Part shown: positions 1-34,341 of the stretch, in pieces
Numbering within the stretch: the stretch's first letter is position 1
Layout: each line of letters opens with the position of its first letter
Assembly: GCA_965240325.2 (NCBI GenBank)
Contig: OZ251244.1
Location: 992,001 to 1,056,000, forward strand
Source: Rebecca billardiae RCC1528
Lineage: Eukaryota; Protista; Haptophyta
Length of the DNA stretch: 64,000 nucleotides
Reading direction: 5' to 3'
The notes under the pieces: model-generated
What the model saw: only the letters and a program-made list of their open reading frames with translations
What the model was told of the DNA's origin: nothing
Databases searched by the model: none
Position numbers and translations under genes: made by a program

Positions 1-1401
1 GCGCTCGAGGGCACGCCGATCGAACCCTGGCTCGATCTCGCTGAGCGCATGGGCACGTCCTTCGACTTCTCGCGCTTCGCCGGAAGCGACTCAGGCGACA
101 CCCTCGCGGCACTCGCGTGCCACGCGGAGGCTCTGAAACGCCGTGGGGCCGGGGCGACGTGCCTGGCAGCGGCGATCGCGTGCGCCACGGTGCTGACGCA
201 GCGCGTCTCCCTCCCTCACTTGCGCTACGACGCGCTGGCAGACGTCTACCAAACCTTGCGCGGGGACGAGTACTCGTTCCTCACCAAGGTCCGCGTCGCG
301 CGCGCGCGCTTCGTGCTCCCGCCCCCCCACGGCGCCGACGGCGCGCGCGCCGACGCGACGTCGGGGGGCACCGCCAAGCAGCAGCAGAAGCAGTCCGCTG
401 CGCCGTCAGCCGACGCGCGCATCCCGTACTTCGAGATCCAGGCAGTGTCCGAGGACTGCATCGCCCTGTACAACCAGGTGGAGGGGGCTGATGCGGGGTC
501 GCAGTGGGCGCCCAACCCGGCGGACTTGCTCTCCTTCATGTTCGTGCCCGGAAACACGCACTCGTGGAGGTATGAGGAGATGAGAAACCGCAAGTCACAG
601 AAGCGCACGCGCGGCGTGCCGAAGCCCGCGGGCAACTTCTGCACGCTCTTCTTCACAGTGTGCACGTACCCGCCCATGCAGGGAGCTGGCGCGCCGCCCC
701 CCACGGAGCGTGGCCTGAGGGACGAGACTGCCTCCATCACCGACTTCCGCGGGCTGTGCTTCACCATCATGCAGGACGAGAAGCCGAGGGGCAATGACGT
801 GCTGTGGACGCACCCGGCTGCCCCCGTGCCGTCCCGCGCTGCGGGCGGCGCCGAGGCGCCGAACGGCGCCGACGCGCCCAAGATGTACGCGGGGCGCCTG
901 GACGTGCCGTGGCACCCCCCCGCGCCCGCGGACGCGCCCGCGGCTGCCGCCGCCACCGGAGCGCGCAAGCGGCGCGCTTCCACGCAACGGGCTGCCGCGC
1001 CCCCGGATGCCGCGACCACCCGCCCGCCCACCACGCGCGCGCCCGCCCGGGGCGCCGCGCCGGCCGGGGGGAAAGTCGCCAGACGTGGCGCTGCCCAGCC
1101 GCGCGCCTCGCAAGCCGACGTGCCCACCATCAACCTCGACGAGCACGGGCGCGGCGACGACGAGGTCGTCGAGGCTGTCGCGGCGCGCCTGTCGCGGATG
1201 ATCGAACCCGTCGCGGCGCGCCTCGACGGCATCGAAGAGCGCACCGCCGGCATCGAAGAGCGCACCGCAGCGGGCCAGCGCGAATTGGCCGCCATGCGCG
1301 CGCGGCAAGACGATCTCACACGCATGCTGGCACAGACCGGCACTGTCCTTGAGCGCTTGGTGGCAAGGACCGAGCCGCGCGAGGGCGCGAGCCGGCGCTG
1401 A
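1..1401 (+). CDS. Orphan protein probably encoded by the MULE, convergent to the transposase; 5' end likely outside the window
   Basis: The frame is open from base 1, with first ATG at 49. It has a complex globular-looking region (IPYFEIQAVSEDCIALYNQ...GNFCTLFFTVCTYP...DFRGLCFTIMQDEK), a basic low-complexity linker and a C-terminal coiled coil (ARLDGIEERTAGIEERTAAGQRELAAMRARQDDLTRML). No family recognised. Confidence 0.7.
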   Translation, partial: ALEGTPIEPWLDLAERMGTSFDFSRFAGSDSGDTLAALACHAEALKRRGAGATCLAAAIACATVLTQRVSLPHLRYDALADVYQTLRGDEYSFLTKVRVARARFVLPPPHGADGARADATSGGTAKQQQKQSAAPSADARIPYFEIQAVSEDCIALYNQVEGADAGSQWAPNPADLLSFMFVPGNTHSWRYEEMRNRKSQKRTRGVPKPAGNFCTLFFTVCTYPPMQGAGAPPPTERGLRDETASITDFRGLCFTIMQDEKPRGNDVLWTHPAAPVPSRAAGGAEAPNGADAPKMYAGRLDVPWHPPAPADAPAAAAATGARKRRASTQRAAAPPDAATTRPPTTRAPARGAAPAGGKVARRGAAQPRASQADVPTINLDEHGRGDDEVVEAVAARLSRMIEPVAARLDGIEERTAGIEERTAAGQRELAAMRARQDDLTRMLAQTGTVLERLVARTEPREGASRR

Positions 1402-2195
1402 CCGTGCGAGCGACCGCTGGGCGGAGGCGGTGCGCCGAACGCACGTCGGCTGCGGTGCTGCCGAGGGCGCACACCGCCGCCAGCAGTGCGCCGCCGCCGT
1501 CGCTGCTCACGCGCTGGGCGCACGCGCCCGGGCCGGTGGGGCGGCGCGGCGGCGGCGTGCGCGCGCACCGCGCGCCCGGCCAGTGCGCGACACCGTGTCG
1601 CACTTACCCGTGCCCATCCATACTGGTGCGCGCCGCGCGACGGGCTTGCGCGTCTCCGGTGCGCGCGGCACCACGCCCGTGCACACCGCCTGACCCCCCG
1701 TTGCTCACCGGTGCCTGCGCGCCGACCCGGTGCACCGTCTGACTGCGCGCGCATGCGCATGCGCAGTGACCTTGCCCTTGCCGTATTCCGCCATGCAGTT
1801 GCACCCGCAGTCCTTGGCCGACGGTGCTCAATCGGCCGGCTTCGTCCGAGTGCGCGTCGTCCGCACAGACAGTGCTTCCCGCCGCGAGTTGGCGTGTCAC
1901 CTTCAGTGTCACCTGCCTAAGTAGGAGTACACAGCCGCTGGTGCCGCCGATGCGGAGCACCCTTATCACACAGCTCCCCGTGCCGTCTGAGCCTGAGGCA
2001 GCCCTGCACTTGTCCGCGGGCGACTCAGCCCCCGACCATCTGAAGCGGCACGAATTCACCGAGCCCCCATCTATGCACCCATCGACATGCAGTCCCAGTC
2101 ACGCACATCCCACATCTCTTCCCCCGCACGTGCCCAACTCCCCGTAACGTGCCCGTCTCCCACTGCGGGGCACGGACGCCACTTCATCCGCCAAT

Positions 2196-5100
2196 CTACT
2201 CGCCACTGCCGCCGTCGGCGCCCGCGGGCGCGTGCGCAGACGCGCGCCGGGCGCGCTCCCGCGACAAGCGCGCGAGCAAACGAGTGGCTGAGTGCTCCTC
2301 GTACCCGTCAAGGCGGGAGTCCAGTGCCGGCTGCGCGAGGACACGGTCGTCGTCCGCGCTGTCGTAGTCCATGGGCTCGCCTTCCGCGGGGTCCTCGGGG
2401 CCGGCGGGCGAGTGCAATGAGAACACCCGCGTGTTGAAGCGCCGCGTGGCGCCACGGTAGCGAGTGAGCCCGACCTCGTCCACGCGCGAGAGCAGCATGC
2501 GGTCGGCCATGTGTGGCGCCAGCGTGGGCTGATACTCCGACGCCCCGTTGTGGGTCTCGTCGTCCTCCACGAGCGCACGCCAGCGTGCACGCGCCTTCGC
2601 GCAGTGACGCTCCGCGCACGCCGCCACGTACGGCCAGCGCCCTTCGCCGCCCGCGGAGAGCGCGCGCGCGGCCGGCGCGGCGTCCGCGCCGGTATCCACC
2701 ACCGCGTGGAAGTGCCCTGGGTGGTACACGACTGCCACCCAGTCAGTGCCCATGGTGCCGAGGTCGAGCCTGCGCAACGCGTGCACGTCCTCCTTCTTCG
2801 TCAGGTCGAAGCTCCCCTCGGAGAAGCACCTCCGGCGTGTGGTGCTGTCCGCCGCCGCATCGCGCGCTCGCTTGGGCGCCCGCCACAACGACACCCGCGG
2901 GAACAGGTTCACCTTGTCTGCGTCCATACGATCGCCGCGCGCGGTGAACGCCAGGACGTGCACACCCAGCGCACGCGACGCGCTGCCCTGCGTCTGCGAG
3001 CCTGGCGTCCACTCGCCACCGCGGCGGAATTCCTCCCAGGCCGAGTCGTAGTCCGCGCCGCCACGGTACAAACGCGCGGCGTACCGCAGGCTGGTCCGGT
3101 TCGTGCCCGCCCATCGGCCCTCGAGCTCCATGTCCTGGCCCGTGCCGCGCTTGCGCAGCTCGTCGGCGCGCACGGCCAGGACGCCGGCGAGCTCACGCTC
3201 CGCAAGCTCGCCGTCCATGGGCTGCCCATCCCACATCGTCGGCCCGCACTCGTTGGGGCCGGTCGGGTGGAAGAACGACGCCATGTAGGACACCGTCGCG
3301 GAGCGCGCGCGCTTGGCGCGCACGTTCATGCGCTGCATAAGCGCGTTGCGCGCCGCGCGCGTGGGGGCCGCCGCGAGGGCGGCCGAATCGTGCGCAAGGA
3401 TAGCGTGGAAGAAGCAGTCCCCGTCGCCGGGCACGTCCACCTCGCGCACCGTCGGGCCGAACAACGTCTTCAGCACGTAGGCCACGGTCGGGGCCCTGAA
3501 CCCACCCCGACCGTCCCCGGCGGGCGACCACCATGGCAAGCCGGTGGCAGACGTCGCCAGCAATGGCGCCTCACGCGCGCGCGCGCGGCTCGCGTCCCAC
3601 CGCGCGAGTGGGAGGCCGAGCTCGGGCATGAGCTGGGCTGCGGCCGACGGCGGCTCGTGCGCGGCGGTGCCAGGCAACCCAGAGCCTTCGTCCGCCCCGG
3701 CCGGACCCGCCTCCGAGCGCCCCGGCCGCGCGCGCGCTGCGAACTGGGCGATGATCTTGTCGGGAATGCTTCTGGCGGTCTTCCAGGCGGTGCGCAGTGT
3801 GTTGTCCAACGACGTGTGCGCGGGCGCCCGCTCGCGCGCACGCATGAAACGGTTGGCCGACGCCTCGCCCACGCCGGCGGCGCTCGTGACCACCCTCCTG
3901 ACCGCGACGTGGCGGTCGCCGAGAGCGGCGTATGCCGCCTCAGCCTCCGCCATGACGTTCGCCGCGCCGGGCGCTGGCGGGGCCACCCCTGGCGTGCCCG
4001 CGCAGGGAGGAGGGCCTGCACCGTCGCCGTCATCCGCGGGCGCCGTTGGCACGGCACCCGGCGGTGGCACTGCACCGCCGCGCGCGTGAGCTGCGTCGGT
4101 GCCCGCGCCCGCCCCCGTCGAGGTGCGTGGCGGCGCGCCACGCGACGCCGGCGGCGCTGCGCCGAAGCGCACTGACGGGCCCGGTGGAGCCTGGGCCGCG
4201 TACGCCCGCGCGCTGTGTGGCTTCTTGCGCGGTTTGCGCGGCTGGCGGGCGGGCTTCGCGGGCGCATCACCCGCGCCGGCGGAGGCGTCAGGTGTGCGCG
4301 AGCCACCTGGCGCGCCAGAGGCGCGCGCGCCCCCGCCGCCGCACGCACCGTCGCCGCCGCCAGCGCGCGCACGGGGCGCGCCGGGCCCGCGCGCGTACGC
4401 CGCCTCCTGCGGCCTGGCACCCGTAGGCGGCGCCGCAGCCGGCGCGCCTTCCTCCTCGGCACGCCACGCGCGCAGCTTCTTCCACGCGCCGGCGACAAGG
4501 AGGAAGTAGCAGCACGTGCACATGTACAGCCCACTGTCCATCGGACCCAGATGCCACACGTACTCGCATTGCGCGGGTGCGTGGATGAAGCACGCGCACC
4601 CCTGGCACGTTAGCCTGGGGTCCACCGGGGGCGCGCTGGCCGGCCACGCAGCGCCGAGGTCGTCGGCTTGCGGGTCGTAGCACGCGCAGCAGCGCAGCAG
4701 GGCCGCCGTCCTCGCGTCGAACGTGGACCAGGCGCGCAGCCGCTGGTTGAACGTCTGAGGCGCGGCCACGGTCCCGCCCACGCGCACGTTGACGTTGCGC
4801 GTGCAGAGCACGTCCTGGAGCGCGATGCCGTACAGGTGCGACGGGAGTTCACTGAGCACCTGCTCGAGCGTCGAGTTCGCCGCTTCGCGCACGCGCGCGG
4901 CGAAGCCGCCGTCGGCGGTCAAGGGCCGCACGTACGTTTGCGTCGAGCGCCCGATGGGCACTGAGTCGTACTCGGAGCGCGAGTGCGGCGCGCGGCGGGC
5001 GCGGCCTCCGCGCGGCCCTCGCTCCCAGAAGCTGGGCGCGCGGTCCGCGTTCGCCGGCCTGCCCGCGCGCGCGGGCATCGCCGGCACGGCGACGTACTCC

Positions 5101-8100
5101 GCCAAGAGCGATTGCAACTGCTGTGACGGTAGCAGAAGGGGCTGCACAGCGTCCTCGAGGCGCCGCGGCGGCGTGATGACGTCCAGCTTCGTGATGGACA
5201 GCACTGCGCCCGTCGGGGCTTGCGTGACGCCGAGCCCGACCTGCGCGTACCAAGTGGCGCTGCGCATGTCCTCGGGGAGGAGCGAGCACACCGGCTCGTT
5301 CACGCGGTTGCACACGAGGCAGAAGTGCAAGCACGGCAGGCGCTTGCGGCGAAGCAGCCCGCAGCACAGGAAGTTGTCGAGGTGCACAAAGCGCTCTTTG
5401 GACTGGTCAGTGGTGCTCAGCACGCGGTAGCAACCGGCGTGCTCGCCGTCGGCGACGAGGTTGCACTCGGCGCCGCCCATGGCGCGCGCGTCCTGCACTG
5501 CGCCGCGCACGTACGGCACGTGCCGCGGTGGCAGCCCGTGCAGGTCGCGATCGGGGTCGGGGTTGAGGGCGTGGCGCACGGCCACGGCGCGGTGCGTGGC
5601 GAAGAGGCGGTAGAGGTTGTCGTGCAGGTCGAGCAGCATCCACACCGGGCCCTGCGACTTGCGCACAGGGAGCAGCCACTTCATGAACGACTCCGCGGGC
5701 GCGCCCGTGACGTAGCCGCGCATCCACACCGGCGCGAAGACAGGGAAGAGCTCGGCGCGCGGGATGAGATCGATGATGCGCTTGCCCGACTCGGGCATCT
5801 CCGCCCAGGCCCGGTCGAAGTCCTCGACGTACAACGCCTGGACGCACCGGTCGAAGACCTCCAGGATCTTGTTGACGTCGTTCGCCGTGTGCGCGTACCC
5901 CGTGATGAAGTTGTCCCGCTTGTGGAAGGTGCACAGGAACAGGTGCCTGCGGGGGCAGAGGAGCTTCCACGCGCCGCGCAGGCCCTTCTGCCCGTCGGAG
6001 ATGGTGACGGAGTCGTCGACGTTCCACACGTCGTCACCGCCCAGCTCCTGCTTCAAGTAGCGCACGTGCGCGCACCACGAGTCTAGGCACTCGACGTCGA
6101 CGATGTACGACACACAGAGCACGAACAGCTGCCCGTTGGCGTTCACTGCGAGCGTCACAAAGAGCATGCCTGTGACGCGCGCAGGTGGCACCGGCGGAGA
6201 AGGCCGGGGTGCGGGTGAATGTGCGTGCCAGGGCGGGTGTGCATGTGTGTGTGTGCGTGGGTGTGCGGCCTGCAGGACACGGAAGGGGGGAAGGGGGGAA
6301 GGGGGGGGGGGGGGTGGGGGGCGCACACCGGCACGCTTGCCACCGCCGCTCGCCGGCCTGTGCAGGTGGCACGCGTCGCTGAACACGGCGCGGTTGCCCT
6401 TGGCCAGGAAGTGCTCACGGTAGAGCTGCTTGGCCTGCTTGGGCACGTAGTGGAAGCCACCGACGGCCTTCTTCCCGCGCACCTCGTCAATGGCGCGCTT
6501 CACCGAGGGCTCCTCCGGGTCGAAGGGCCGCCTGGCGCCGAGCGGCACCGAGCGCTGGGCGCTGTCGTGCACACGGCGGAACATCGCGAGCACGTCGCTG
6601 TGCACTGTGTCCGCGGCGAAGACGATCGGCGCGACCGCGTTGCCCTCCGCCGAGAGCCCGGCGGTCACTGCCACCAGGTCGCGCGACATGGCGCTGTCGT
6701 CGCCGTAAATCTGCTCGCGCGCGACGGCGAGCGCCCTGCGCACGAGGCTCTCACCCACCTTCTCCGGGACGAGCGCGCGCGCGACGGCCTTGCTCTCCGT
6801 GACGCCGTACGCCAACTGCGCGTGCGTGGCGCCGCGCTCGCGCAAGCGCGCCCGCCAGTCGTGCTCGACGGCCTTGCCCAACTGCTTGGCGGAGTAGGGC
6901 CACACGCGCACTCGCGCCTTGGTCCGCGACCGACTCGGCGAGGTGACTGGGTTCGCGCGCGAGCCGGCGCCGCCGGCGTTGTTGTAACAGTCCGGGCTGT
7001 GTGCGGAGGATGCCTCCACGTACCACGCCGGTCGGCCCCACACGGCGTGATCCGGCGCGGGGCCCACCTGCACACGGAACGCGCAGTTCGGCGTGGTGCA
7101 CGTCACCCTCAGCTTGGAATGGTCCAGTTGGGCGGACGGCGGCATGATCCGCCGGTGCACGGCGCACTCCGCTGCGAGGGTGATGGCGTCCGCGAGGCGC
7201 TCGAAGCGCGTGCCGGGTCGCACGAGTGTGTCGCTCGCCAACGAGGAGTCACGGACCACCTCCGTGTGCGGGCGTGGCGGCCTCGAGCCCAACACCTTCC
7301 AGCCTTCCACGGGCGCGAGCGCATGGTGCTGCCCCGCTCTGGACTGCTTGGGCAGTGGGTGGTACTCGGCATCTCCGCCGTGGTGCTGTGGCAAGGGCTG
7401 GCCCTGCGCGCCTGCCGCGGCGCTTGCGCCTGGGACGGCCGTGCGCGTGGCGGGCGTAGGCTGCGCGCACGCGCCGGACGGGGGGCACGTCACAAGCGCC
7501 GCGAGCGGGTCGTGCGCAGTTGACGCACCGGCTGCGCCAGCGTGGGCGGAGCCCTCCCGAGCGTCGTCGGACACATCGTCGCGGTCGCCGCTGGGACAGA
7601 AGCGCGCGCTCTCGTCCTCACAGAGCATGAGTGGGTCGGTGGCCTCCCACTCGTCGATCCGCGCGAGCGCGGCACTGCCGGCGTCCGGCTGCGAGATGAC
7701 ACCACTCACGGCCCCCGCGCCATCCTCGCTGAGGAGGAGCGTCTGCCAGTCCGCGCTCAGGACGAAAAGGGGTGCGTTGCCGCTCGCAGCTGCACGCGTG
7801 TGCGCCGAGCGACTGCGGCCGAGGTCCTGCACAACAGTGCCCACTGCCTTCGCAGCCTGCCGTTGTTCGTCGGTCGCCGTCGCCGCGTGAAAGTGGCCTC
7901 CGACATGAGCGGCCTGGCCGGGTCGGAATGCCAGCCTGAGCTCGTGTGGCGCCAAGTGCAGGGTACCATGTGGTGGCCGCGGCAGCGGCATGTCCGCGTT
8001 GTCCGTGCCAGGCCCACCGACGGCGCGAGCCTGGACGTTCGAGGCCAAAACGCCCGCGAGCGCGCTCGGTCCGGCGCCGTCGACGCGCTCCTCGCCCAGG

Positions 8101-11100
8101 CGCACGGCGTTGCCGAGCACGCTCTGCGTCGGCGCGGCCGTGCAATGCGCAACCGCGGCGGCAGTGCCACCGGCGCCATGCGCGCCAGTCGCCTCGCCGC
8201 CGTCTGGCACATCGGCGCTGCCGGGGGACCCTTCGCGCAGCACGCGCGCATTGGCGTGCGGACCACCTCCGCCGCCGCCGCCGCCGTCACAGCCCGTGGA
8301 CGCCGGCGCGCCATGCACCGCCACGACGACACACGGGCTCGTGCAGGCGGCGGAGGCGTCCGCCTGCGTGCACAACAGCGGCGCCCGCGCAGCGGGAGGG
8401 GGGGCAGGCCAGGGGCAGACGGGTGGCGAGCTGCTGATGGCCCCCGGAGGACGTGGGCCGGCGTCGGCGCCTGGCGCGCGGCCGTCCACGCCGCGCGGCG
8501 TCGGTGTCCCCGGCCCTGCACGGACAGGGCCCGTGCCGTGCGACGTGTCGCGCTGCCCGTGCGGGCCCGCAGGTGGCGAGCGGGCTGCAGCTGTCAGCGA
8601 CGCGTCGCCGTTGTCAGCACCGGGGAGCGCGAGCAGAAGCGCCGAGTGCGCCCATTGGCGCTGCGCGCGTTCTGGCGGCACATGCACGCACTGCGTCACG
8701 CCGCGCAAGAGCTCCTCGGGATCGGCCGTCGGCGCGTCGCCCAGCGCGTGTTGGACGCAGTCGGCCACGTACTGCTGGTGCTGGGGCGAGCCCATGTTGA
8801 ATGCGGGGAATGCGCCCTGCGCGTCGCCAGGCGCGCCAGCGCGCAGCTTCCGGCTGTACAGGTGCCGCAAGCCCGATTCGAGCGTGAGGACGAAGCGATG
8901 GGGCGTGAGCGGCGCAGGCGCAGAGACGAGAGCTGCAGGCGAGGCTGCCGGCGCGGCCAGCACCATCGGGCTGCGGTGGCCGCCCGCCGCGCGCAGCGCG
9001 GCGGCGAGTTCGGGCGACCCGAACAAGAACACAGCCTTGATGACATCGCCGTCGAGAGTGTGCGCGCGCCGCGGCTTTTTCCCCGACATGTCGCTGTGCG
9101 CAGGGGCGGTCCCGCCCCGCGGCGCCTGCGCCGAGCGGTGGTACAGCATGGACGGGAAGATGTGCACGGTGCCTGCCACGTCGCCGCCCTCCACGTCGCC
9201 GCCATGCAGCGGAGCGGCGACGGGGTGTCCGTCCGGGCCCGCGTCCAGGAGCTCGAGCGGGTAGGGGTTCCCCCCCGTGAGGTGCGACGGCACGTGCACG
9301 ACGAGCACGGCCGTCCAGACGTGGGGGTCGTGCACCATGTCGCTGTCCACGTGCCAGCCGTATGTGGTGGCCTCGCCCGCTGCGGTCTGGCCATCGCTGG
9401 TTGCGCCCGCGTGCGCGTCCGCAGGCGACGGGCGCGCGAAGACGTGCCACGCAGTGAGAACGGGGCTGGAGTGCTCCACGTCGAACACCGCCTCCATGAA
9501 GGCCTGCAGTGTAGTCACCACGTCCGCGAATGGTGGGCAGTCCAGCACCGCTGTCGGCGTGCCCGCCTCGGCGCCATGGTCGCCCACCCCCCAGCGGCGC
9601 TGCTCGGCGGCGACGCCGGCGGCATCGGCGGAGTGATAGGCGAGTGCAGTGCGGATGAGGGCATGGTCCGCAGCGTGGAGGGGCATGGAGGCGTCGCCCG
9701 ACCCGCCTAACCTGGCGTGGACAAAGACGTAGTCGCGCAACGCCTGCACAGCGTGTGGTGGTATGCGAACGCTGTGGGCAGTGGCCGCAGCGTCGCCGAA
9801 GGCTCGGCGAAGCGCGTGCTGGACCGCCAAGTTGTGCACGAGCATGTCGCACAGGCTCAGGGACGACGCGGGGGTGTTCGGCGGGGCTTGGCGCGGTGGC
9901 GGTGCGCGCAGGGCCGGTGAGGGGTCCTGCGGCACCCCCGGCGGGCGAGGGCACCCCGCCGAAAGAGCGCCTGACACCGCGCTCACGGCTTCTCCGGACA
10001 CGCGCGCGGCGGCGCCGGCGACGGCGTGCGCGCCGACCAGAGTCACCACCAGCGTCACCGGCGGCATCGCCACCGCTGCATCGGCCACCAAGGCTTCGGC
10101 GAACGTCGCGTCGAGGAACGGGTGCAGACGTGCGCCCACGCCGACGTGCACCAGTGCGGGCGTGAGCGGGATGACGACAGCCCACACAGTGCGACGCTCG
10201 AGGACGGAGATCGCGTGCAGCAACGGCCGCGCCAGCCAGCCCTCGCACAGCGCACGCCCTTCGCACGCGTCGAGAAAGGCCGTCAGCCCAGCGCGGCCGT
10301 CGTCGCCGACGTCAGACACGGACGCGCGCAGCGCCCGCGCGGCAGCGACCCGCCGGTCGCAGTCTGCACCGTCTGCATCGTCGTGGACTGCGTGGCCGGC
10401 CGCACGGCGGCACTCGGCGTCAGCGCGCAGCGCTTGGTCCACAGCGCGCAACCACGTGGCGCGCGCGCGCAGCAGTTCCCGCCAGAGCAGATCCGCCCGT
10501 TGGCCCGCCTGCACCGACGAAGACGTCTCCATGTAGAGCGCGTGGTCCGCAAGCGGCGGCGCGGGGGCCAGCGCCCCACGTAAGCTCGTGTACGCACGGG
10601 TACGCAGGTGGTCTGCCGCGTGCGCGTCGGACACGCCGGGGGCTGACGCCGACGCCACGCGCACAAAGGCGGCGAAGAGGTCTTCGCGGCATCCGGCGTC
10701 GGCGCCGAACACCGCGCGCGCGTAGTATTCCACGGCCGGCGCCGGCTTAGCCCCTGTGCCACCCGCTCGCGGATCCACAGTCGAGAACACGCCGTGTATG
10801 TCCCCCGCGTCCGGGCGGGGCGCGCACAGCGCAGCGAGCGCCACCTTCACCTGCAGAGGCGAGCTCGCCCATGCCGCACGCACCGCGATGGCAGCAGGGG
10901 CGCGAGGCAACGGCGGCGGCGACCCCTGCCGCCGCCGTTGCGCCGGCGCACCCCTGCCCACAGAGCCCCCCCCCGAGTCCGAGGTCGGGTCGTGACCTAG
11001 CAACCCACCGCCGGCAGCGCCTCCGGCAGCGGCGCCGTGCGCATCGCCAGGCGGGGGCGACGACACCGGGTCACACCCAGCTGGGCACAGCGAGGTGGGC

Positions 11101-11918
11101 ACCGGCAAGTGCTCGGCGCCGGGAGCGCCGGCGCAGCCGGCGCCATGCATCGCCGCAAACGCCAGGGCGCGGAACCACAGGGCAGCAGACGACAGCCTAG
11201 ACAGCCTGTCGCAAGAGCCGCCCATGTCGCCGCCCAGGTCCAGTACAGCCTCGGCTGAGGCCAGCACACCGACGCACTCGGTGAAGCAGAGAAGCGCCTC
11301 CGCACTCGCCAGATCCGACACCACCGGCGGCACGCAGCCGGTGCCACCAACACGACCACCAGCCTGGGCGGCGCTCACCGAGCCCAGCACGCACAGCACG
11401 AGGACCAAGCTGAACTCCCACGGGGTGTTCTGTGGAGTCATCCGCAGAGCATTCAGCGCGCTCTCCGCTCCGCTGACGAACTCGTCAATCCGCAACGCGC
11501 GCACAGTGGTGCCGTCGACGCGCCTGGGCTGCACCACGTCAGATGACGCCTCCGCCTGCGCGCGACAGATGCACGGTGCGCAACAGATGCACGATGGCGG
11601 GCAAAAGGGGCGGGGGGGGGGGTGGGGGTGGGGGGCGCGGGGTGCGACGTTGGAGGCACCGGCACGCACGTCGGTGCAGGCAGTACCCTCTGCCAGCCGC
11701 CCGCGCGCAGCACCGCCACCCAGCCGCGCGCACCATCGTCCTTGCGTGCGCAGCAGTTCCGTCGTACAACCACCAAAGCGGGCAAAGGGCGACACCTGCG
11801 CGCGCGTCCGGAGGCCACGCGCGCGTGAGGCGGCGCGCGCGCAGGCGGCGGCATGTTGTGCACGTAGCTTGCGCGTAACGCCGCACGAACCAGCTCCGCC
11901 TGCGCGCGCGCGCGCCAC
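2196..11918 (-). CDS. Multidomain Mutator transposase: OTU-like, 2OG-Fe(II) oxygenase-like, Mutator zinc DBD, DDE, SWIM, PHD-like, OTU; true start codon uncertain
   Basis: DBD ~6985-7220 (GTRFERLADA...RVTCTTPNCAFRV...WYVEASSAHSPDC). DDE core ~5640-6460 (VFSDACHL / GMLFVTLAVNANGQLF / TISDGQKGL / HLFLCTFHKRDNF / TGAPAESF). SWIM ~5320-5400 (CCG...LPCLH). Cys/His finger ~4510-4700. OTU ~2690-3460 (VPGDGDCFFHAI...YHPGHFHAV). 2OG-like ~9015-9780 (GWHVDSD...IFPSMLYHRS). In-frame GT-AG introns predicted at 6170-6328 and 11556-11669. Confidence 0.9.
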   Translation of the reverse strand: MARARAGGAGSCGVTRKLRAQHAAACARAASRARGLRTRAQVSPFARFGGCTTELLRTQGRWCARLGGGAARGRLAEGTACTDVRAGASNVAPRAPHPHPPPRPFCPPSCICCAPCICRAQAEASSDVVQPRRVDGTTVRALRIDEFVSGAESALNALRMTPQNTPWEFSLVLVLCVLGSVSAAQAGGRVGGTGCVPPVVSDLASAEALLCFTECVGVLASAEAVLDLGGDMGGSCDRLSRLSSAALWFRALAFAAMHGAGCAGAPGAEHLPVPTSLCPAGCDPVSSPPPGDAHGAAAGGAAGGGLLGHDPTSDSGGGSVGRGAPAQRRRQGSPPPLPRAPAAIAVRAAWASSPLQVKVALAALCAPRPDAGDIHGVFSTVDPRAGGTGAKPAPAVEYYARAVFGADAGCREDLFAAFVRVASASAPGVSDAHAADHLRTRAYTSLRGALAPAPPLADHALYMETSSSVQAGQRADLLWRELLRARATWLRAVDQALRADAECRRAAGHAVHDDADGADCDRRVAAARALRASVSDVGDDGRAGLTAFLDACEGRALCEGWLARPLLHAISVLERRTVWAVVIPLTPALVHVGVGARLHPFLDATFAEALVADAAVAMPPVTLVVTLVGAHAVAGAAARVSGEAVSAVSGALSAGCPRPPGVPQDPSPALRAPPPRQAPPNTPASSLSLCDMLVHNLAVQHALRRAFGDAAATAHSVRIPPHAVQALRDYVFVHARLGGSGDASMPLHAADHALIRTALAYHSADAAGVAAEQRRWGVGDHGAEAGTPTAVLDCPPFADVVTTLQAFMEAVFDVEHSSPVLTAWHVFARPSPADAHAGATSDGQTAAGEATTYGWHVDSDMVHDPHVWTAVLVVHVPSHLTGGNPYPLELLDAGPDGHPVAAPLHGGDVEGGDVAGTVHIFPSMLYHRSAQAPRGGTAPAHSDMSGKKPRRAHTLDGDVIKAVFLFGSPELAAALRAAGGHRSPMVLAAPAASPAALVSAPAPLTPHRFVLTLESGLRHLYSRKLRAGAPGDAQGAFPAFNMGSPQHQQYVADCVQHALGDAPTADPEELLRGVTQCVHVPPERAQRQWAHSALLLALPGADNGDASLTAAARSPPAGPHGQRDTSHGTGPVRAGPGTPTPRGVDGRAPGADAGPRPPGAISSSPPVCPWPAPPPAARAPLLCTQADASAACTSPCVVVAVHGAPASTGCDGGGGGGGGPHANARVLREGSPGSADVPDGGEATGAHGAGGTAAAVAHCTAAPTQSVLGNAVRLGEERVDGAGPSALAGVLASNVQARAVGGPGTDNADMPLPRPPHGTLHLAPHELRLAFRPGQAAHVGGHFHAATATDEQRQAAKAVGTVVQDLGRSRSAHTRAAASGNAPLFVLSADWQTLLLSEDGAGAVSGVISQPDAGSAALARIDEWEATDPLMLCEDESARFCPSGDRDDVSDDAREGSAHAGAAGASTAHDPLAALVTCPPSGACAQPTPATRTAVPGASAAAGAQGQPLPQHHGGDAEYHPLPKQSRAGQHHALAPVEGWKVLGSRPPRPHTEVVRDSSLASDTLVRPGTRFERLADAITLAAECAVHRRIMPPSAQLDHSKLRVTCTTPNCAFRVQVGPAPDHAVWGRPAWYVEASSAHSPDCYNNAGGAGSRANPVTSPSRSRTKARVRVWPYSAKQLGKAVEHDWRARLRERGATHAQLAYGVTESKAVARALVPEKVGESLVRRALAVAREQIYGDDSAMSRDLVAVTAGLSAEGNAVAPIVFAADTVHSDVLAMFRRVHDSAQRSVPLGARRPFDPEEPSVKRAIDEVRGKKAVGGFHYVPKQAKQLYREHFLAKGNRAVFSDACHLHRPASGGGKRAGVRPPPPPPPSPLPPFRVLQAAHPRTHTHAHPPWHAHSPAPRPSPPVPPARVTGMLFVTLAVNANGQLFVLCVSYIVDVECLDSWCAHVRYLKQELGGDDVWNVDDSVTISDGQKGLRGAWKLLCPRRHLFLCTFHKRDNFITGYAHTANDVNKILEVFDRCVQALYVEDFDRAWAEMPESGKRIIDLIPRAELFPVFAPVWMRGYVTGAPAESFMKWLLPVRKSQGPVWMLLDLHDNLYRLFATHRAVAVRHALNPDPDRDLHGLPPRHVPYVRGAVQDARAMGGAECNLVADGEHAGCYRVLSTTDQSKERFVHLDNFLCCGLLRRKRLPCLHFCLVCNRVNEPVCSLLPEDMRSATWYAQVGLGVTQAPTGAVLSITKLDVITPPRRLEDAVQPLLLPSQQLQSLLAEYVAVPAMPARAGRPANADRAPSFWERGPRGGRARRAPHSRSEYDSVPIGRSTQTYVRPLTADGGFAARVREAANSTLEQVLSELPSHLYGIALQDVLCTRNVNVRVGGTVAAPQTFNQRLRAWSTFDARTAALLRCCACYDPQADDLGAAWPASAPPVDPRLTCQGCACFIHAPAQCEYVWHLGPMDSGLYMCTCCYFLLVAGAWKKLRAWRAEEEGAPAAAPPTGARPQEAAYARGPGAPRARAGGGDGACGGGGARASGAPGGSRTPDASAGAGDAPAKPARQPRKPRKKPHSARAYAAQAPPGPSVRFGAAPPASRGAPPRTSTGAGAGTDAAHARGGAVPPPGAVPTAPADDGDGAGPPPCAGTPGVAPPAPGAANVMAEAEAAYAALGDRHVAVRRVVTSAAGVGEASANRFMRARERAPAHTSLDNTLRTAWKTARSIPDKIIAQFAARARPGRSEAGPAGADEGSGLPGTAAHEPPSAAAQLMPELGLPLARWDASRARAREAPLLATSATGLPWWSPAGDGRGGFRAPTVAYVLKTLFGPTVREVDVPGDGDCFFHAILAHDSAALAAAPTRAARNALMQRMNVRAKRARSATVSYMASFFHPTGPNECGPTMWDGQPMDGELAERELAGVLAVRADELRKRGTGQDMELEGRWAGTNRTSLRYAARLYRGGADYDSAWEEFRRGGEWTPGSQTQGSASRALGVHVLAFTARGDRMDADKVNLFPRVSLWRAPKRARDAAADSTTRRRCFSEGSFDLTKKEDVHALRRLDLGTMGTDWVAVVYHPGHFHAVVDTGADAAPAARALSAGGEGRWPYVAACAERHCAKARARWRALVEDDETHNGASEYQPTLAPHMADRMLLSRVDEVGLTRYRGATRRFNTRVFSLHSPAGPEDPAEGEPMDYDSADDDRVLAQPALDSRLDGYEEHSATRLLARLSRERARRASAHAPAGADGGSGE

Positions 11919-12056
11919 ACGGCCGTCGCGCGCGAGTTCGCCAGGAGGCGGGCGTGCACATTATGCAAACCAACGGAGGCGCACGCGGACAGAGCGCGTG
12001 CGCGCGCGCCGGGAGGCCACGCGCGCGTGAGGCGGCGCGCGCGCAGGCGGCGGCAT
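11808..12056. repeat. Subterminal ~45-bp direct repeat pair of the MULE
   Basis: GGAGGCCACGCGCGCGTGAGGCGGCGCGCGCGCAGGCGGCGGCAT occurs at ~11810-11854 and ~12012-12056. Confidence 0.8.
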
Positions 12057-12250
12057 CGCGCGCCTCCCCCGCTCCCCCCGCCCGCAGCCCGACGCGCGCG
12101 CGCGCGCGCGCGTCGGGCGCGCGCGCGCACCTCGTTCGCGCGAGGTGCGCGCGTGGGGCGATGGGGGCTCTTCGGGGCTTTTTTGCGGGCTCCGAAGAGC
12201 CGCGAGGGGCCCCGCGGCCGAAACAGCACGCGAGGGCGTCGAAACGACGC

Positions 12251-12512
12251 GAACCCCGTGTTTGATTAAGTGTTTCGCCGGCGGGGTTCATTTCGCGGGT
12301 ACTGCGCGTAATCGGCGACGTCAAAAGACGCGATTGCGCCGTTTCGGCGCAATCGCGGGGTTCGGTATCTTCGTGCGCGTGGCTTGCCCGAATGTTCGAC
12401 AATCGGACTTCTGGGGTACATCGCGTCCGGAAAAGCCCCTCGCGAGGTTCTGGCCGATTTGGCGGGATTCTGCACAAGCCGCCGCGAATCGGCGGGGTTC
12501 TGAACTTTTCCC
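12251..12512. repeat. Candidate right terminal inverted repeat region of the MULE
   Basis: GCGGGGTTC occurs at 12281, 12355 and 12492, with an inverted GAACCCCG at 12251. A perfect 13-bp-stem hairpin spans 12329-12357. The region ends in ...TGAACTTTTCCC. Confidence 0.6.
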
Positions 12513-13145
12513 TATATAATAATACGACCGATGACATATATCATTATTAATCATTATTACGCGCACGACTCCGAGGCTCACTCACAGTCACGTGCTGCCG
12601 CGTCAGCCTCCGCGGTGGCGGTTCATGACTACTGTTTGCCGACTCCCTCCCCGGGACGGCCTCTGTCTGGGCGGATAACGACTATATACGGTGCTGCTGT
12701 GAGTGAGTGTGCCACTACCGCCAGTGACCGTGTCTGGTCAGCCAGATCGGCCGCCGTCGTGACCGCTCCGTGACTAGTGACGGCGGACCTCACGCCGTCA
12801 CGGGCGCCTAGTGACTCTCGACCACGGGCAGCTGCCGCGGACGCGGCCGGACGGCTGGTTGATAATGCCAAGCGAGCCTGGGACGATCAATATATGACCG
12901 CGTTCCGCGGTCCTTTTCTGCATAGAATCAACGCAGTTGGGGGCCCGCGGTGGCCGTGCAATCGCGGCTCTCCGCCGTAGTGGCAGTTCGCCAGTTGAAG
13001 TCGGTTCTGAGATGACTGAAGCTATTAGTCCGACCGTCGCCCTGCCTGCGCGACCGCGAGACTCATTCACACTTCACACAATCACAGCAGCGGACCTGAG
13101 ACCGCACCCGGCACCGGTCGTCAAATCGGACGTCCGTCTGACAAC

Positions 13146-13291: not shown

Positions 13292-14639
13292 GAGTGAGTC
13301 GTGCCGCGGAGCTCGGAGTACTGAAGGAGTCGGGTGTGACAGCAGGGTGCTTTAGCGCTGCGGCCCGTGCCAGCCAACGACCAGACGTACTCTGGCCACT
13401 TGACCCGTTGCACGGGTGAGTGACCGTACGCCCTGCCTAGTGCCTACCGCGCGCGCCGCGCGACCGGCGACTCGGGGTGATGGAGAGCGGATGGCGACAG
13501 CAGCAGCAGTCCTCATGAAGACGATGAAACTGGCGGCACGGGTGCACGAGGTGGCAGGCGAAAGCGCGCCGACGAGACCGCATTTGACACACCTGAGCCG
13601 CACGCGCGTGCCGTCGCCGAGCGGCGAGCGCTGCAAACGCGCAACCGTACCGCGCGCGCCACGACTACGGCGCGGCACTAGCTGATGCAGGCCGTACTGC
13701 CGGCACTGCTTCTGCGATCATGCGCCACGGTCGCAGCTGACTGCGTGAGCAGCAAGCGGGAGGCGGGTCCGGAGGCACGTGCAGGCGCCGTCCCGCATAT
13801 CCGCCATCGCCCATCGGCATCGTGCCGGGGCACGTCACCTCCGACGATCCGGATGTGGCCCAGTCCGGACGTCACGCGATCCGGGAAGACGAGTACGATT
13901 CGCTCGTAACGAACCGTTACACTAAAGTCACGGCCAGGCTCACGTCCCGTCCATCGATTACTTATGGAATCAGCTGGGCGCGCTCTTTTTCGGCCTAATA
14001 GACCTCTCTATGCGATCTCAAAAACTCGAAACTCGGTCTCCGCCAGCCCTAAAAATCGCCCCCCGTTCCTTTTTTTTCGCCGCCCCCCGTCCCTTTTTTC
14101 TTGATGATCAAAGATCTTTTTGAAACGTGGTTCGGGCCCGCTGGTGCGGGCTCCACGCTGCGCGCTCCGCCCTGCACCGCGGGCCATTAATAGCTTGGTG
14201 TCAGCTCTTAGATCCTACACGATCGACTCAGTTATTGTAGTGCCAATAACGCCGCCACATATATAGCGCGCGTATATGATATGATGATACATCATCCGTC
14301 ATCCCGGATGAGCCGTATTACTATTATTATATTATATATATATATATATTAAATTTAATATCCGAGCGCTGGCATCGGAGTACTACTCTACTACCGGACC
14401 GTCACTCCGTGCCCGCCGCTGCGGTCACGGCGTCGGGCGTACTCGTGCCGAGTACTCCGTTGAGTCCGTATTCGTAAGACTGTGCTGATTGTCAGATATT
14501 GATACGACATCATTCAGCGCAGTCGTGACTCAGCAGTACGTGACGCGACGCGACGATATCGATATCATATGCTGCTGATGATGACGACGCGACTAGATAG
14601 ATGACATATTGACAACGACTACGACGCGCGCGCCTAGCC

Positions 14640-17600
14640 CTAGAAGCCGCCGGTCGCGTTCCGCCTGAGCGGTGCGGCGCCGGACGTGGCGGGCTGATGG
14701 CCGTACAGCGCCGCGCCGGTGTGGTGCTGCTCGACGCTCGGCAGCGCCGCGACCTCCGGCAGCGTGCCGCTGCTCACGTGCCGAAGCGCCGGCTTCTGGT
14801 TCGGCCCGCTCGCCGTCGCGCCGCCGCCCGGCCCGGAGAAGGTCATGCGGCGCGAGTGCGAGCTCGGCCGCATGGTGGTCGAGCCCTTGCGGATCAAGCC
14901 GGCCGCCTGCGCGCCGCTGTGCAGCTCGTTGGTCGAGCGCACGCGCCCGCCCCTGCGCGGCGCGCGCGGGGCGGAGGGCGGGTGAGCGGCGGCGGCGGCG
15001 GCGCGCGCGCTCGCGCGCGCTCGCGCGCGCTCGCGCGCGCTCGCGCGCACCTGCCGAGCATGGGCGGGCCGGCGGGCGGCGCGGAGGGCGCGCCGCCGTG
15101 CTGACCCAGATCCCACTGGGTGGCGCCCGACCCCGCGCCGGGGCCGAAGGCGGGCCCCGGGTCTGAGGCGCGCAGCCCGGCGTTGCTATGCCCGATCCCT
15201 GCGCGGCAGCGGCGGCGGGGGTGGCGGCGGCGGCCGGCGTGGCGCGCGGTCAGCGTGGCGCGCGATGGCGCGCGATGGCGCGCGCGGCGCGCGCGGCGCG
15301 CGCGGCCCGCGTGTGTTGCGCATTGATGGGCGCAGCGCGCGCCGCACCGACGCCGACCAGCCCGACGTTCTGAAGGGCGCCGCCCATGCCGCAGCCGAGC
15401 GTGGCGCCCGCGGCGGTGGGCGCGAGCGGCGGCGCGCACGGCGCGCTCGAGCCGCCGCCGCCGCCGCCGCCCGCCATGTCCAGGCTGACGGCTGCGAGCT
15501 TGAGCCCGACCTTGCTCAGCGTCGGCCCGCCGCCCGCGCCGCCGCCCGCGCCGCCGAGTCCGACCACCGTCGCACCCGGGTTGAGTCCCGCGCGCGCCTC
15601 GCCGCCGAAGACGAGCTCGACGCGCTCGCGCTCGTCGGGCGTGATCGGCCGGCCGTCGATCACCTCGACCGAGCTCAGCCGCTTCACCAGCGTCGGCCGG
15701 TACAGCTGCTTCCGCGCCACCGGGTTGCCCGCCGCCGACAGCCGCAGCAGGCCGCCCAGAGAGGCCAGCTTCTCGAGCTCGGAGACGTCCACGATCCGGT
15801 TGGCCGACAGGCTGAGCACCTCGAGGCACGGCAGCGGCGAGGGCGGCTCGAGCGTGCGCAGCTGGTTCTCGTCGAGCCGCAGCTCCGCCAGCCGCTCCAG
15901 CCCGGCGAAGCACTCCGCCTCGAGCACGCGGATCCGGTTGCGCTCGAGCGAGAGCTCCCGAAGCTTTGCCTGCGCTGAGAAGATTCTCGCCGGGAGGCGC
16001 GCAATCTCGTTGCCGCCGAGCCGCAGCGAGTGCAGCGAGGGCAGCTGGGCGAGCGGGAGCGCGTGGAGGTCGGCGATCTGGTTGGCGGTGAGGTCGAGCC
16101 GCTCGAGCACCGGGCTCACGTGCCGCAGGCTCGCGAGCGGCCGCGCGAAGCCGCCGCCGTCGGGCGGCGCGCCCGGCGCGCGCGCGCCGCCGCCGCCGCC
16201 GCCGCCGCCGTGCGCGGCCGCCGCCGCGCCCGCCGGCGTCGACGGCGCCGTCGGGCCGCCGCCGGCCGTGAGCGCGTTCGAGCTGAGGTTGAGGACGAGG
16301 AGGGTGGGCAGCGGCTGCAGCGAGCCGAGCTCGCTCAGCTGGTTCCCCGCCAGGTTGAGCTCCGCGATGCCGGGGAACGCCTCAGCGCCCACGAGCGACA
16401 CCTCGCGCAGCTTGGCGGCCGACAGGTCGAGCACGTGCAAGTGTGGCCACGCCGCGCCCGCGCCCGGCGCGCCCGCGGCGGGCGGCCCGGCGCGCGCGAC
16501 GATCAGCTCGTGGGTGAGCTTCCCCGCGAAGCGCTCCTTCGCGACCGACTGCTCGTGCGAGTCCACCGCCGCGCCGTCCAGCACCTTCAGCCGGCGCAGA
16601 AGATACAGCGCGTACAGGCGGTACTCGCTGTCGCCGCAGAGCGGGTTCCCGGAAACGTCCAAGATGATCAGCTTGGGCAGCCCCTTGAGCCGGTGCGCCT
16701 GTGCGCGGAACAAGCAGTCCGGGGGGAGGAGCACGCGTCCGGGGGGCGTGCGGGCGCGGCGCGAGGGAGGGCGCGCGGCTGCTGAGCGCGCGCGCCGAGC
16801 CGCCTCGCGCGCCGCCGCGCGCCATCCGCCGCGCCGCGCGCGGCCGCGCCCGCCCCTCCTCCCCTTCGCCTCTCGCGCGCGCGCGCGCCGCGCTCGGCGC
16901 GCGGGTCACGGCGCGGCGCGGCGGCGTCGCGCGCACCTCGCGCAGCGCGGCGATGGCGTTGTTGCCCGCGTACAGCTCCATCAGCCCGACGAGCTGCTCC
17001 ACGCCGGCGAGCGTGGCGATCTGGTTGTCCTCCACACTGACCTGCGTCATGCTCTCGAGCGGCGCGAGGCCCTCCAGCGAGGTCAGCCGATTCTTACCCG
17101 CCTCGAGCTTGCGGAGGCAGCGCAGCGCGCCCAGGCCGTCGAGCCGGCTGACCCGGTTGTCCTCGAGGTTGAGCTCCTCGAGGCCGGCGCAGCACTCGAG
17201 GCCCTCGATCCGGGTGAGCTCGTTCCCGGCGAGCGAGAGAACGCGCAGGTGCACGAGGGAGTCCAGGCCGTGCACGCGCTTCAGGCCGAGGCCGTCGAGG
17301 AGGAGGTGCTCGACAGCGCGCTCCCACTCGGAGCCCGCGGTGGCGGCGTTGGCGCCGCCGCCGCTGCCGCCGATGGCGCCGCCGACGCGCCCGTCGGGCT
17401 CGGCGGCGGCGGCGGGGCCGGTGGGCAGCCCGGCACTCAGCCGCGCGCCGGACGGCGCCGCGCCGCCCGCGCCGCCGCCCGCGTCGCCGCCCGCGCGCGC
17501 CGGCGCGGCCGTGAGCGCCACCCCCTGACTGAGCAGCTCCGCGACCGTGCGCGGGCGCGCGGTGCCGGAGTAGCTCGAGTTGGGGAGGCTCGGCGGGTTG

Positions 17601-19045
17601 CGCAGGTAGCTGTGCGCCTGTGGGCGCGAGGCGGGCGTCGCGCGTGTGTCGCGCGCCGCGGCGGGACGGGTCGGTCGGCGGCGCGCGCGGCGGGCTGCCC
17701 GCCCCCCCCGCCGCGCGCGCGACAGCGCGCGCGGGCGCGCGCACCTGCAGCAGCGTGGGCGTGATGGTGAGCAGCCCGCCCGCGTCCGCGCCCGCCGCGA
17801 GCAGCAGCTGCCGCTCGTCCGCGCTCACGGCGGCCCCGTCCAGCTCGGTGAGCGCCGGCAAGCGCGAGAGAACGGTCAGCCGGTATCCCCTCGTCTCAGC
17901 GAGGGCGTTGGCGCGGAGGGAGAGGCGGTGCAGCGTGCCGCCGCAGCACGCGCGCAGCACCGCCGCGTCCTCCAGCCGGTACAGCAGGTTGTTGTGCAGC
18001 AGCAGCTCCTGCAGCCGCGCGCACGCCGTCAGCCCCTCGACGCGCTTAATCAAATTAAAAGATAAATCGAGGTGCAGCAGCGAGTGCAACTCCTCAAGCC
18101 CGCGCATCGACTCGATCTCGTTGAAGCTCAGGTCGAGCGAGGTGAGCGAGCGGCACTCGGGGAGGGCGAGCCCGTCGATCACGCGCACGCCGTGCCCGTG
18201 CAGCCCCAGGTGGCCCCAGCCGCCGCCCGCCGCGCCGCCGCCGCCGCCGCCGCCGCCATTCGCAGCGAGCGCGCCCGCCGCGGCGTCGTCGCGCGCGGCC
18301 GCCGCGACGGCCGCGGCGGCCGCGCGCACCGTGTCCTCGCCGAGGCGTGAGAAGCGCGCGCGCTGCGGCAGCGCGGGCGGCAGCGCGAGCGCCGCCGCGC
18401 ACTCCGCGTCGTACGTCGGGCTCGGCGCCTCCGCGTCCGCGCCGCCGCCGCCGCCGCCGCCCGCGTCCGCAGCGTGCAGCGCCGCCGCTGCGCCTGGCCC
18501 GCACTTGCGCACAAAGTCGGCGAGCGGCCGGGCGAGCGCGCCGACCTCGGCGGCGGACATGCCGGGCCCCGCGTCGACGAGGCGCGCGGGCAGCGCCACC
18601 GCCTCCCCCGCCCCGCCGCCGCCGCTCGCCGCCGCGGCGTATTCAAACTCCACCACGTACTCCGTGAGCGCGAGTGCCGGATCGAAGAGAAACCATTCGC
18701 GCTGCCTACCGTCGTCCGGTCTCGCCTGGCGGAAGGCGGAGTGGTGCGAGGGGTAGTCGGCGGAGACGACGGCGCCGTCGCGCGCCGCTGTGCGCGACGC
18801 GTCCTCCGGCGCGCACTTCCCCAGGAACACCTTGCAGATCAGTAGCTGGCCGCGCAAGACGCCGGCAGACTCGAGAGCGAGCGCGCCCGCGCCCGCGCGA
18901 GCAGGCCCGCCGGGCGCGGCGCTGCCGCCGCCGGCGGCGGCGGCGTCGCCGCCCGCCGCCTTGGCCGCGGCGGCCTGCAGCCTGGGCAGGTCGGCGAGCG
19001 AGATCGAGTTGGTGAACGCCCACGCCGCGCTCGTCGAGCCCGCGC

Positions 19046-19077
<32 letters not shown>

Positions 19078-21225: not shown

Positions 21226-21430
21226 GGCCCCCGGCGCGCTCCGCGGGAGCGTCGCCCTTGACGTTGCAAGGCCGCGCTCTGCGCCCTTACGCGATCTCGC
21301 CGCTGGGGAGATCGCCAGGACAATGGCGGCGCAGGCTTGGTTGGGTTTGAATATTGCTGCTGCCGAATTTGACCGCGGGAACAACCCTAACCCCCTCTAT
21401 TTCTTTGGCGGGAACTGGCCGGCCCGCACG

Positions 21431-23780: not shown

Positions 23781-23835
23781 TAAACGCGTAGCAGCTACTT
23801 GATGATACGCGTACGTCTCAGCACTGAGACATCAT

Positions 23836-23837
<2 letters not shown>

Positions 23838-23909
<72 letters not shown>

Positions 23910-23935
23910 CTCTCTCTCTCTCCGTCTCTCTCTCT
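23838..23935. repeat. (CT)n microsatellite
   Basis: Long, slightly interrupted CT run. Confidence 0.95.

Positions 23936-34265: not shown

Positions 34266-34268
<3 letters not shown>

Positions 34269-34340: not shown

Positions 34341-34341
<1 letters not shown>

Follow-up and report, generated by a model that had tools for sequence, protein, structure and literature searches.

The first 12,512 nucleotides of a 64-kb stretch of DNA from the haptophyte Rebecca billardiae RCC1528 (GCA_965240325.2, contig OZ251244.1; the whole stretch is called the window here, and positions are counted from its first letter) are largely occupied by a single minus-strand open reading frame (ORF) of 9.7 kb. We read this frame as encoding the transposase of a Mutator-like element (MULE) followed by an OTU-type cysteine protease. 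Positions 1-12512 are, in our judgment, likely to be the right-hand part, at least 12.5 kb long, of a giant autonomous DNA transposon of the MULE type, which resides in the GC-rich nuclear genome of an alga and is cut by the left edge of the window. An earlier note on this DNA (the original prediction) had described a giant Mutator element equipped with its own chromatin toolkit. The core of that description, a MULE frame with an OTU and a PHD-like cluster, stands, while the toolkit rests mostly on a dioxygenase that we could not confirm.

A 9.7-kb frame on the minus strand

The stop-free frame noticed earlier is present in full, and its features are collected in Table 1. Residues are numbered along all of its codons, so that codon i starts at position 11918-3(i-1). 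The earliest in-frame ATG is at 11441 (residue 160), from which about 3,080 codons follow. Because the DNA of the element is about 72% GC and stop-free frames are cheap at this composition, we judged coding from codon-position bias rather than from the absence of stops. Measured in 150-nt steps, GC is highest at the third codon position and lowest at the second in three blocks that share one frame, with GC contents of 0.81-0.94 at position 3 (GC3) and 0.42-0.62 at position 2 (GC2). GC3 is 0.81-0.85 in the N-terminal half, 0.92-0.94 in the transposase core and 0.90 in the OTU region; for comparison, host genes of the same window have values of 0.83-0.97. The N-terminal block resembles the RCC1-repeat host gene of the window in its full ranking, GC3 > GC1 > GC2.

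Two aperiodic, low-complexity linkers join the blocks. Linker 1 is either a disordered linker or one or more introns. Only 1.8% of shuffled versions of linker 1 and 20% of those of linker 2 were free of stops, giving a joint chance of about 0.004 that both would lack one, a figure that does not yet include the 1-in-9 odds for a shared frame. Every shuffle of the 915-codon N-terminal block contained a stop, and the remaining two sense frames are interrupted by 34 and 25 stops. Because shuffles are so seldom stop-free and the other sense frames are interrupted this often, the joining of three same-frame coding blocks without a stop is not due to chance. We rejected a purely GC-driven ORF, which is opposed by both the codon periodicity and the shuffle results.

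Table 1. Features of the window, listed from the N-terminal to the C-terminal end of the giant frame, then the putative terminus, the convergent ORF and the host genes
Feature	Positions	Strand	Residues	Basis or properties
Giant stop-free frame	2196-11918	-	3,240 codons	9.7 kb; GC3 periodicity
Periodic coding blocks of the giant frame		-	~120-1074; 1370-2470; 2670-3235	GC3 periodicity
N-terminal region	9849-11441	-	160-690	GC1 0.78, GC2 0.62, GC3 0.81; looks coding
Candidate P4H-type 2OG-Fe(II) oxygenase-like module, unconfirmed	8949-9401	-	~840-990	motif layout, language-model neighbours
Linker 1, low-complexity Gly/Pro/Ala	7809-8696	-	1075-1370	GC1 0.81, GC2 0.67, GC3 0.78; aperiodic
MuDR-type (WRKY/GCM1-like) zinc DNA-binding domain	6969-7226	-	1565-1650	PF03108 match
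RNase H-like DDE transposase core	5589-6821	-	1700-2110	PF10551, PF00872, IS256 matches
Probable in-frame intron	6170-6328	-		159 nt, GT...AG, C-rich, GC3 drop
SWIM-like zinc motif	5319-5372	-	2183-2200	motif alone
PHD-like C4HC3 Cys-rich cluster	4509-4691	-	2410-2470	motif alone
Linker 2, low-complexity Ala/Gly/Pro	3909-4496	-	2475-2670	GC1 0.84, GC2 0.80, GC3 0.79; aperiodic
OTU-type papain-like cysteine protease	2679-3470	-	~2817-3080	Cys loop, central block, His motif
Putative right terminus and subterminal region	12150-12512	-		motif repeats, hairpins, composition break
Convergent ORF, coiled-coil-like C-terminus	49-1401	+	450 codons	GC1 0.70, GC2 0.59, GC3 0.88
LRR protein	17097-20693	-		host gene
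Amino-acid transporter	20567-22801	+		host gene
Sugar transporter	24737-26872	+		host gene
RCC1-repeat protein	27749-29206	-		host gene
ShK-domain protein	38531-40516	-		host gene
Mem_trans protein	40532-43747	-		host gene

Transposase, zinc motifs and protease

The middle block carries a series of matches to Mutator transposase profiles. The Pfam profile of the Mutator DNA-binding domain (DBD), PF03108 DBD_Tnp_Mut, aligns with aa 1566-1618 over profile positions 4-56 of 67 (E 0.064). In this domain, C1607, C1612, H1640 and C1644 can be read from the sequence as candidate zinc ligands with the pattern C-x4-C...H-x3-C. Downstream, PF10551 MULE matches aa 1919-2001 with an E value of 5.7e-4 and 20.7 bits, not reaching the gathering score of 27.6. 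Together with PF00872 Transposase_mut (E 0.056) it spans aa 1917-2013, and the NCBIfam IS256 transposase profile also matches the DDE core (E 0.082). A protein-language-model look-up of the DDE core (Atlas) gave a score of 0.92, with 199 of 256 features shared; every neighbouring cluster listed carries MULE, and many carry SWIM as well. Reading the sequence against the family consensus, we assign the probable catalytic triad to D1848 (6375-6377), D1975 (5994-5996) and E2076 (5691-5693).

A SWIM-like motif lies where it is expected, downstream of the DDE core. Its spacing is CC-x9-C-x-H (C2185, C2186, C2196-x-H2198), which is non-canonical in that CC replaces CxC, and a Pfam search of the giant frame returned no SWIM match. 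The SWIM domain named by the original prediction is therefore a candidate recognized by its Cys/His spacing. PF03108, PF10551, PF00872 and the CC...CxH motif follow one another in canonical N-to-C order. With a MuDR-type DBD, a DDE core with a readable D-D-E and a SWIM-like motif all present and colinear, we identify the middle block as a divergent MULE transposase. The claims of a Mutator zinc DBD, a DDE core and their order thus gain support from the ordered PF03108, PF10551, PF00872 and IS256 matches and from Atlas neighbours that are exclusively MULE. A word-indexed protein search with the MULE piece gave nothing at E 0.001 and was probably swamped by poly-Pro words, and a metagenome scan with the MULE core returned pattern matches alone, none of which was confirmed.

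The DDE core appears to be split. The first catalytic Asp (FSDACH) is separated from the following conserved strand by a Pro/His-rich stretch of 61 codons in which GC3 falls to 0.64, compared with 0.88-0.94 on either side. Within it, a segment bounded by GCCG/GTGTGC ... GTCACAG/GC (slashes mark the boundaries) is probably an in-frame intron. Such an intron, splitting the domain, would account for the first 14 profile positions of PF10551 being unmatched. It would also mean that the "single ORF" is in fact an intron-containing gene, in which one intron or more happens to be free of stops.

Further towards the C-terminus, eight Cys and His residues form a PHD-like cluster with the spacing C2410-x2-C2413-x24-C2438-x2-C2441-x4-H2446-x4-C2451-x15-C2467-x2-C2470. 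All eight ligands are there at near-canonical spacing, but with H-x4-C instead of the usual H-x2-C. A Pfam search found no PHD at E <= 10. As with the SWIM motif, what remains of the PHD-like finger proposed earlier is its C4HC3-like spacing, and no Pfam match backs it.

The last block ends in what we identify, from three conserved segments, as an OTU cysteine protease. D2832, C2835 (3414-3416) and H3069 (2712-2714) are the candidate catalytic residues. The Cys loop, for which the OTU signature is D-G-x-C-[LF]-[FY]-x-A, reads DVPGDGDCFFHA and occupies aa 2827-2838, and its first 11 residues, DVPGDGDCFFH (aa 2827-2837), match the OTUs of solved nairovirus L proteins exactly (E 0.002; phmmer against the PDB). 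As an outside OTU set we used giant-virus and nairovirus-like contigs found through this loop in a viral-contig scan with the OTU piece, a scan in which the matches were confined to the Cys loop. A hidden Markov model (HMM) of these viral OTUs has a single match in the giant protein, at aa 2825-2860 (28.7 bits). When the HMM was built without the Cys loop, its sole match fell where a central OTU block should lie, at aa 2944-2996. BLASTP without the loop likewise aligned aa 2936-2998 with a viral OTU over 64 residues (E 0.012, five-sequence set) and paired YHPGHFH (aa 3065-3071) with a viral His motif. The Cys loop, central block and His motif therefore occur in the expected order, with a long insert between the last two.

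That insert is probably the reason why Pfam OTU profiles are not significant: PF02338 has no match in the frame, and the best that PF10275 Peptidase_C65 reaches is E 0.28. Alignment of the OTU by hhalign covered an 18-column Cys loop alone, and a word-indexed protein search with the OTU piece found no relative. The C-terminal OTU of the original prediction is nonetheless upheld by the agreement of the Cys loop with solved viral OTUs, the central block and the His motif. Four giant-virus contigs in IMG/VR encode, in ORFs that start near 4953-4983, proteins of about 670-1,256 aa that begin with an OTU bearing the same VPGDGDCFFH loop; from there an acidic linker leads to a P-loop region (GVGKT) of helicase-like character.

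The putative terminus and the N-terminal half

At position 12512 the sequence changes abruptly to an AT-patchy intergenic style. Inside this boundary, GC drops from 0.72 in the element to about 0.60-0.65 in the terminal region. The outer end, read on the minus strand, is GGGAAAAGTTCAGAACCCCGCCG. The motif GCGGGGTTC has three exact copies in the window, all of them within 12281-12500, compared with an expectation of 0.97 per whole window; variants of the motif and two hairpins accompany the exact copies in the terminal ~360 bp. A right terminus at 12512 is plausible, and it would represent a terminal inverted repeat (TIR). It is the sole candidate terminus and lies upstream of the N-terminal half of the frame.

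One of the hairpins, at 12329-12357, has a near-perfect 13-bp stem (CGCGATTGCGCCG ttt CGGCGCAATCGCG); the other, at 12155-12212, is imperfect and also falls in the putative terminal region. A sequence of about 45 nt (GGAGGCCACGCGCGCGTGAGGCGGCGCGCGCGCAGGCGGCGGCAT) is directly duplicated at 11810-11853 and 12014-12057, 204 bp apart, so that the pair takes in both the 5' end of the giant frame and upstream DNA.

Between this terminus and the transposase lies the half of the protein for which we found no counterpart. There is no Pfam domain in aa 160-690, and an exhaustive phmmer search with aa 380-1120 against 1.84 billion representative proteins gave 0 matches. The original prediction had placed a further OTU-like region near the N-terminus. 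This assignment is unsupported: the viral-OTU HMM is silent there and matches the C-terminal Cys loop alone, and no Cys is found at the proposed catalytic spot.

The other domain proposed for this half, a 2-oxoglutarate (2OG)-Fe(II) oxygenase, could not be confirmed. Candidate ligands can be picked out as H856-x-D858 (9345-9353) and H927 (9138-9140), together with a basic K961. Two overlapping language-model look-ups (aa 667-1020 and 800-1010) returned neighbours that are nearly all 2OG-Fe(II) oxygenase clusters of the PF13640 clan, with scores of 0.92-0.93 and 143-155 shared features, a range that the tool itself grades as "chance hit or distant relative". Aligned by MAFFT L-INS-i with the cyanophage protein PiuC, the module lines up in four blocks: YGWHVD, a hydrophobic strand ending in GG, G-x-VHIFPS-x3-H and K-AVFLF. 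In another MAFFT run, the HxD was displaced by two residues.

No other test lent the module support. Searches of Pfam, PHROGs, NCBIfam and the PDB gave nothing at E <= 10. Using PiuC of P-SSM2 and 78 relatives as the PF13640 reference family, hhalign of the module against these 79 sequences returned a probability of 0.4%, and hmmsearch --max with the family found nothing. In a Smith-Waterman shuffle test the module reached a z of 1.5; 39 of 500 shuffles scored as well, and so did other tiles of the ORF. AlphaFold did not yield a usable fold, the confidence (pLDDT) being 35.6 for a model from the single sequence and 38.2 when the PiuC alignment was supplied. A word-indexed protein search with the core of the module found no relative, tblastn of the core against 50,697 phage records produced one chance match, a viral-contig scan with the region gave nothing, and a metagenome scan with the region gave pattern matches alone, none of them confirmed. 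The oxygenase claim is thus left with the motif layout and the language-model neighbours in its favor. We lean modestly towards the module being a real, distant double-stranded beta-helix oxygenase domain; if so, it would be of the P4H (protein-hydroxylase) type rather than TET/JBP.

Public read data bear on whether the N-terminal half belongs to the element. Three DNA-like runs are available, all of very low depth, and they yielded scattered 151-nt pieces. In one of them, a contig about 83% identical to the window spans 10082-10230, and 9 of the 11 listed differences fall at third codon positions (estimated binomial chance ~0.001). The N-terminal half thus appears to have a second, diverged copy, and the third-position bias points to purifying selection. 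Since the N-terminal half shares the frame of the transposase, is joined to it by a stop-free linker, has the terminus upstream of it and is represented by this diverged copy, indirect evidence favors its membership in the element. At 11607-11642, contigs of all three runs pile up, and in the deepest run their depths add up to about 150,000. The loose ends of this pile-up are poly-G, marking it as a low-complexity artefact that carries no copy-number signal.

On the other side of the giant frame, a convergent ORF runs towards it from near the left edge of the window. It looks coding, having GC1 above GC2 and a high GC3, as expected for the convergent orphan gene described earlier; the overlapping antisense ORF (246-1760) has GC1 < GC2 and is not coding-like. 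Searches with the convergent ORF found no known family, only weak coiled-coil-like matches. It may belong to the element as its second gene or may simply lie next to it. The host genes beside the element were surveyed in the region 15000-44000 and are given in Table 1. Long (CT)n microsatellites at 23808-23960 and 34237-34370 adjoin AT-rich TATATA patches. Similar AT-rich patches occur at 12513-12560 and 14250-14350, and such sequence seems to be typical of intergenic DNA in this genome.

Interpretation and comparison with known elements

If the locus is a giant MULE, as we think likely, it would carry one very long minus-strand gene, interrupted by one or more short in-frame introns and containing the two low-complexity linkers. 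From N to C, its product would comprise a lineage-specific half of about 1,400 aa that may include the oxygenase-like module, a MuDR-type DBD, the DDE core, the SWIM-like and PHD-like motifs, and the OTU with C2835 and H3069. The DBD may bind the repeated subterminal sites of the GCGGGGTTC type, and the DDE core would carry out cut-and-paste transposition. The OTU could cut the polyprotein into working parts, as proposed for MULE-OTU fusions of Medicago; alternatively, it could act on the transposase or on chromatin by removing ubiquitin-like modifiers. Tethering of the complex to chromatin might be aided by the PHD-like finger. What the sequence itself establishes is the frame with its coding periodicity, the order in which the MULE matches fall, the OTU signature and the features of the end region.

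Several observations count against this reading. No partner end, TIR pair or 8-11-bp target-site duplication lies within the window, the left end of the element being beyond position 1, and no paralogue of the element was found in the window either. The MULE-like terminus of the original prediction accordingly has its repeat-rich end and its composition break at 12512 and has no partner inside the window. All MULE and OTU profile matches fall under their curated thresholds, the oxygenase module failed every profile, alignment and structure test, and no relative of any part emerged from the word-indexed, exhaustive and metagenome searches. Finally, stop-free frames of more than 2,000 codons also occur on both strands at 55468-62274, so that ORF length by itself is weak evidence in this genome. 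Those frames consist of GC-rich short-period (~12-nt) repeats and may represent a gene for a giant low-complexity protein.

These long frames elsewhere, the rarity of stops at 72% GC and the two aperiodic linkers are what one would cite for the frame being mostly a by-product of composition, with a real MULE core, perhaps a real OTU, and non-coding or decayed sequence for the rest. We regard this as highly improbable, given that none of the shuffles of the N-terminal block is stop-free, that this block ranks its codon positions as a host gene does, that the other sense frames hold 59 stops in total and that the differences in the diverged copy are mainly at third positions. The same diverged copy speaks against the N-terminal half (aa ~160-1370) being host-derived and without a role in the element, whether as a captured, Pack-MULE-like fragment or as an adjacent gene joined in frame, with "2OG" motifs that are coincidental or vestigial. 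Gene capture is known for MULEs (PMC6431247), the half lacks relatives and domain matches, its GC3 is lower than that of the MULE core, and an aperiodic linker of 296 codons parts the two. However, the half shares the frame across a linker that is stop-free as few shuffles are, the putative terminus lies upstream of it, and the mostly third-position differences imply purifying selection on its frame, so we judge a host origin of this kind to be improbable.

A further explanation is a single-locus host gene that arose from a MULE transposase by domestication, as FHY3/FAR1 or MUSTANG did, and that has acquired extra domains and is immobile. In its favor, the very long frame is intact, ordinary host genes sit beside it, its codon bias is similar to theirs and the window has no second terminus. 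Against it, the D-D-E triad looks intact, a 360-bp end region rich in repeated motifs occupies the position of a TIR, and the read data contain a diverged copy; we give it a slim chance. We therefore retain the giant MULE as the best explanation. The more ambitious proposal, that a giant algal Mutator family encodes an active Fe(II)/2OG hydroxylase, a PHD-type reader, an OTU deubiquitinase and a transposase in one polypeptide, is in our view unlikely. If true, it would amount to a self-carried chromatin or anti-silencing toolkit that, in contrast to the separate TET/JBP genes of fungal transposons, acts in cis on the transposition complex or on the chromatin of the insertion site.

The original prediction had taken the domain combination to be undescribed. 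MULE transposases with a C-terminal protease of the OTU superfamily are, however, already published, as an expanded group in Medicago truncatula, and so are MULE transposases with a C-terminal PHD finger, from Ciona and C. elegans (Babu, Iyer, Balaji, Aravind 2006, PMC1702500); the claim is thus partly right, the novelty lying in the size and the orphan N-terminal half. The Medicago proteins have the same order in one polypeptide, with a WRKY/GCM1-type DBD, a MULE DDE core, SWIM and the C-terminal OTU, for which the authors proposed polyprotein processing (PMC1702500). The giant protein differs from them in being several times longer, in possessing a PHD-like cluster and some 1,400 additional residues at the N-terminus, in having its OTU about 600 residues from the core, in its algal host and in its lack of detectable relatives in databases. 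A PHD finger on a Mutator-superfamily transposase is also known from Rehavkus elements (PMC6446971). Like those of Rehavkus and of the Ciona and C. elegans MULEs, the finger predicted here is C-terminal to the catalytic core, whereas it is recognized by Cys/His spacing alone, has H-x4-C and has no Pfam match.

As the evidence stands, the solid part of the locus is an unusual yet recognizable variant of published MULE architectures. New are its size, its algal host and its N-terminal orphan half (about 1,400 aa), to which an in-frame P4H-like oxygenase would be added if confirmed. Should the whole frame prove to be one protein, it would be among the longest cut-and-paste transposases known, with about 1,400 residues that have no relatives among the 1.84 billion representative proteins.

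Two broader comparisons can be drawn. OTU cysteine proteases are also encoded by Ginger1 (PMC2836005) and Helentrons (PMC6431247), where the OTU is likewise an accessory domain of a eukaryotic DNA transposon. These elements use other transposition enzymes, a Gypsy-like integrase in Ginger1 and Rep/helicase in Helentrons, rather than a Mutator DDE transposase. The algal case would join this recurring link between OTU proteases and transposons, and it makes testable the question of whether transposon OTUs process a polyprotein or remove ubiquitin-like modifiers. For the candidate oxygenase, a study of fungal DNA transposons (KDZ and others) describes elements that bring TET/JBP 2OG dioxygenase genes, thought to counter epigenetic silencing; these genes are often near, or encoded by, transposons, and a search of the study found no use of the word "fusion" (PMC12730594). 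The fungal elements are an earlier case of DNA transposons equipped with an Fe(II)/2OG dioxygenase of their own. In contrast, the unconfirmed candidate described here would be P4H/PF13640-like and in frame with the transposase and, if confirmed, would be a new kind of transposon-borne enzyme, distinct from the fungal TET/JBP genes.

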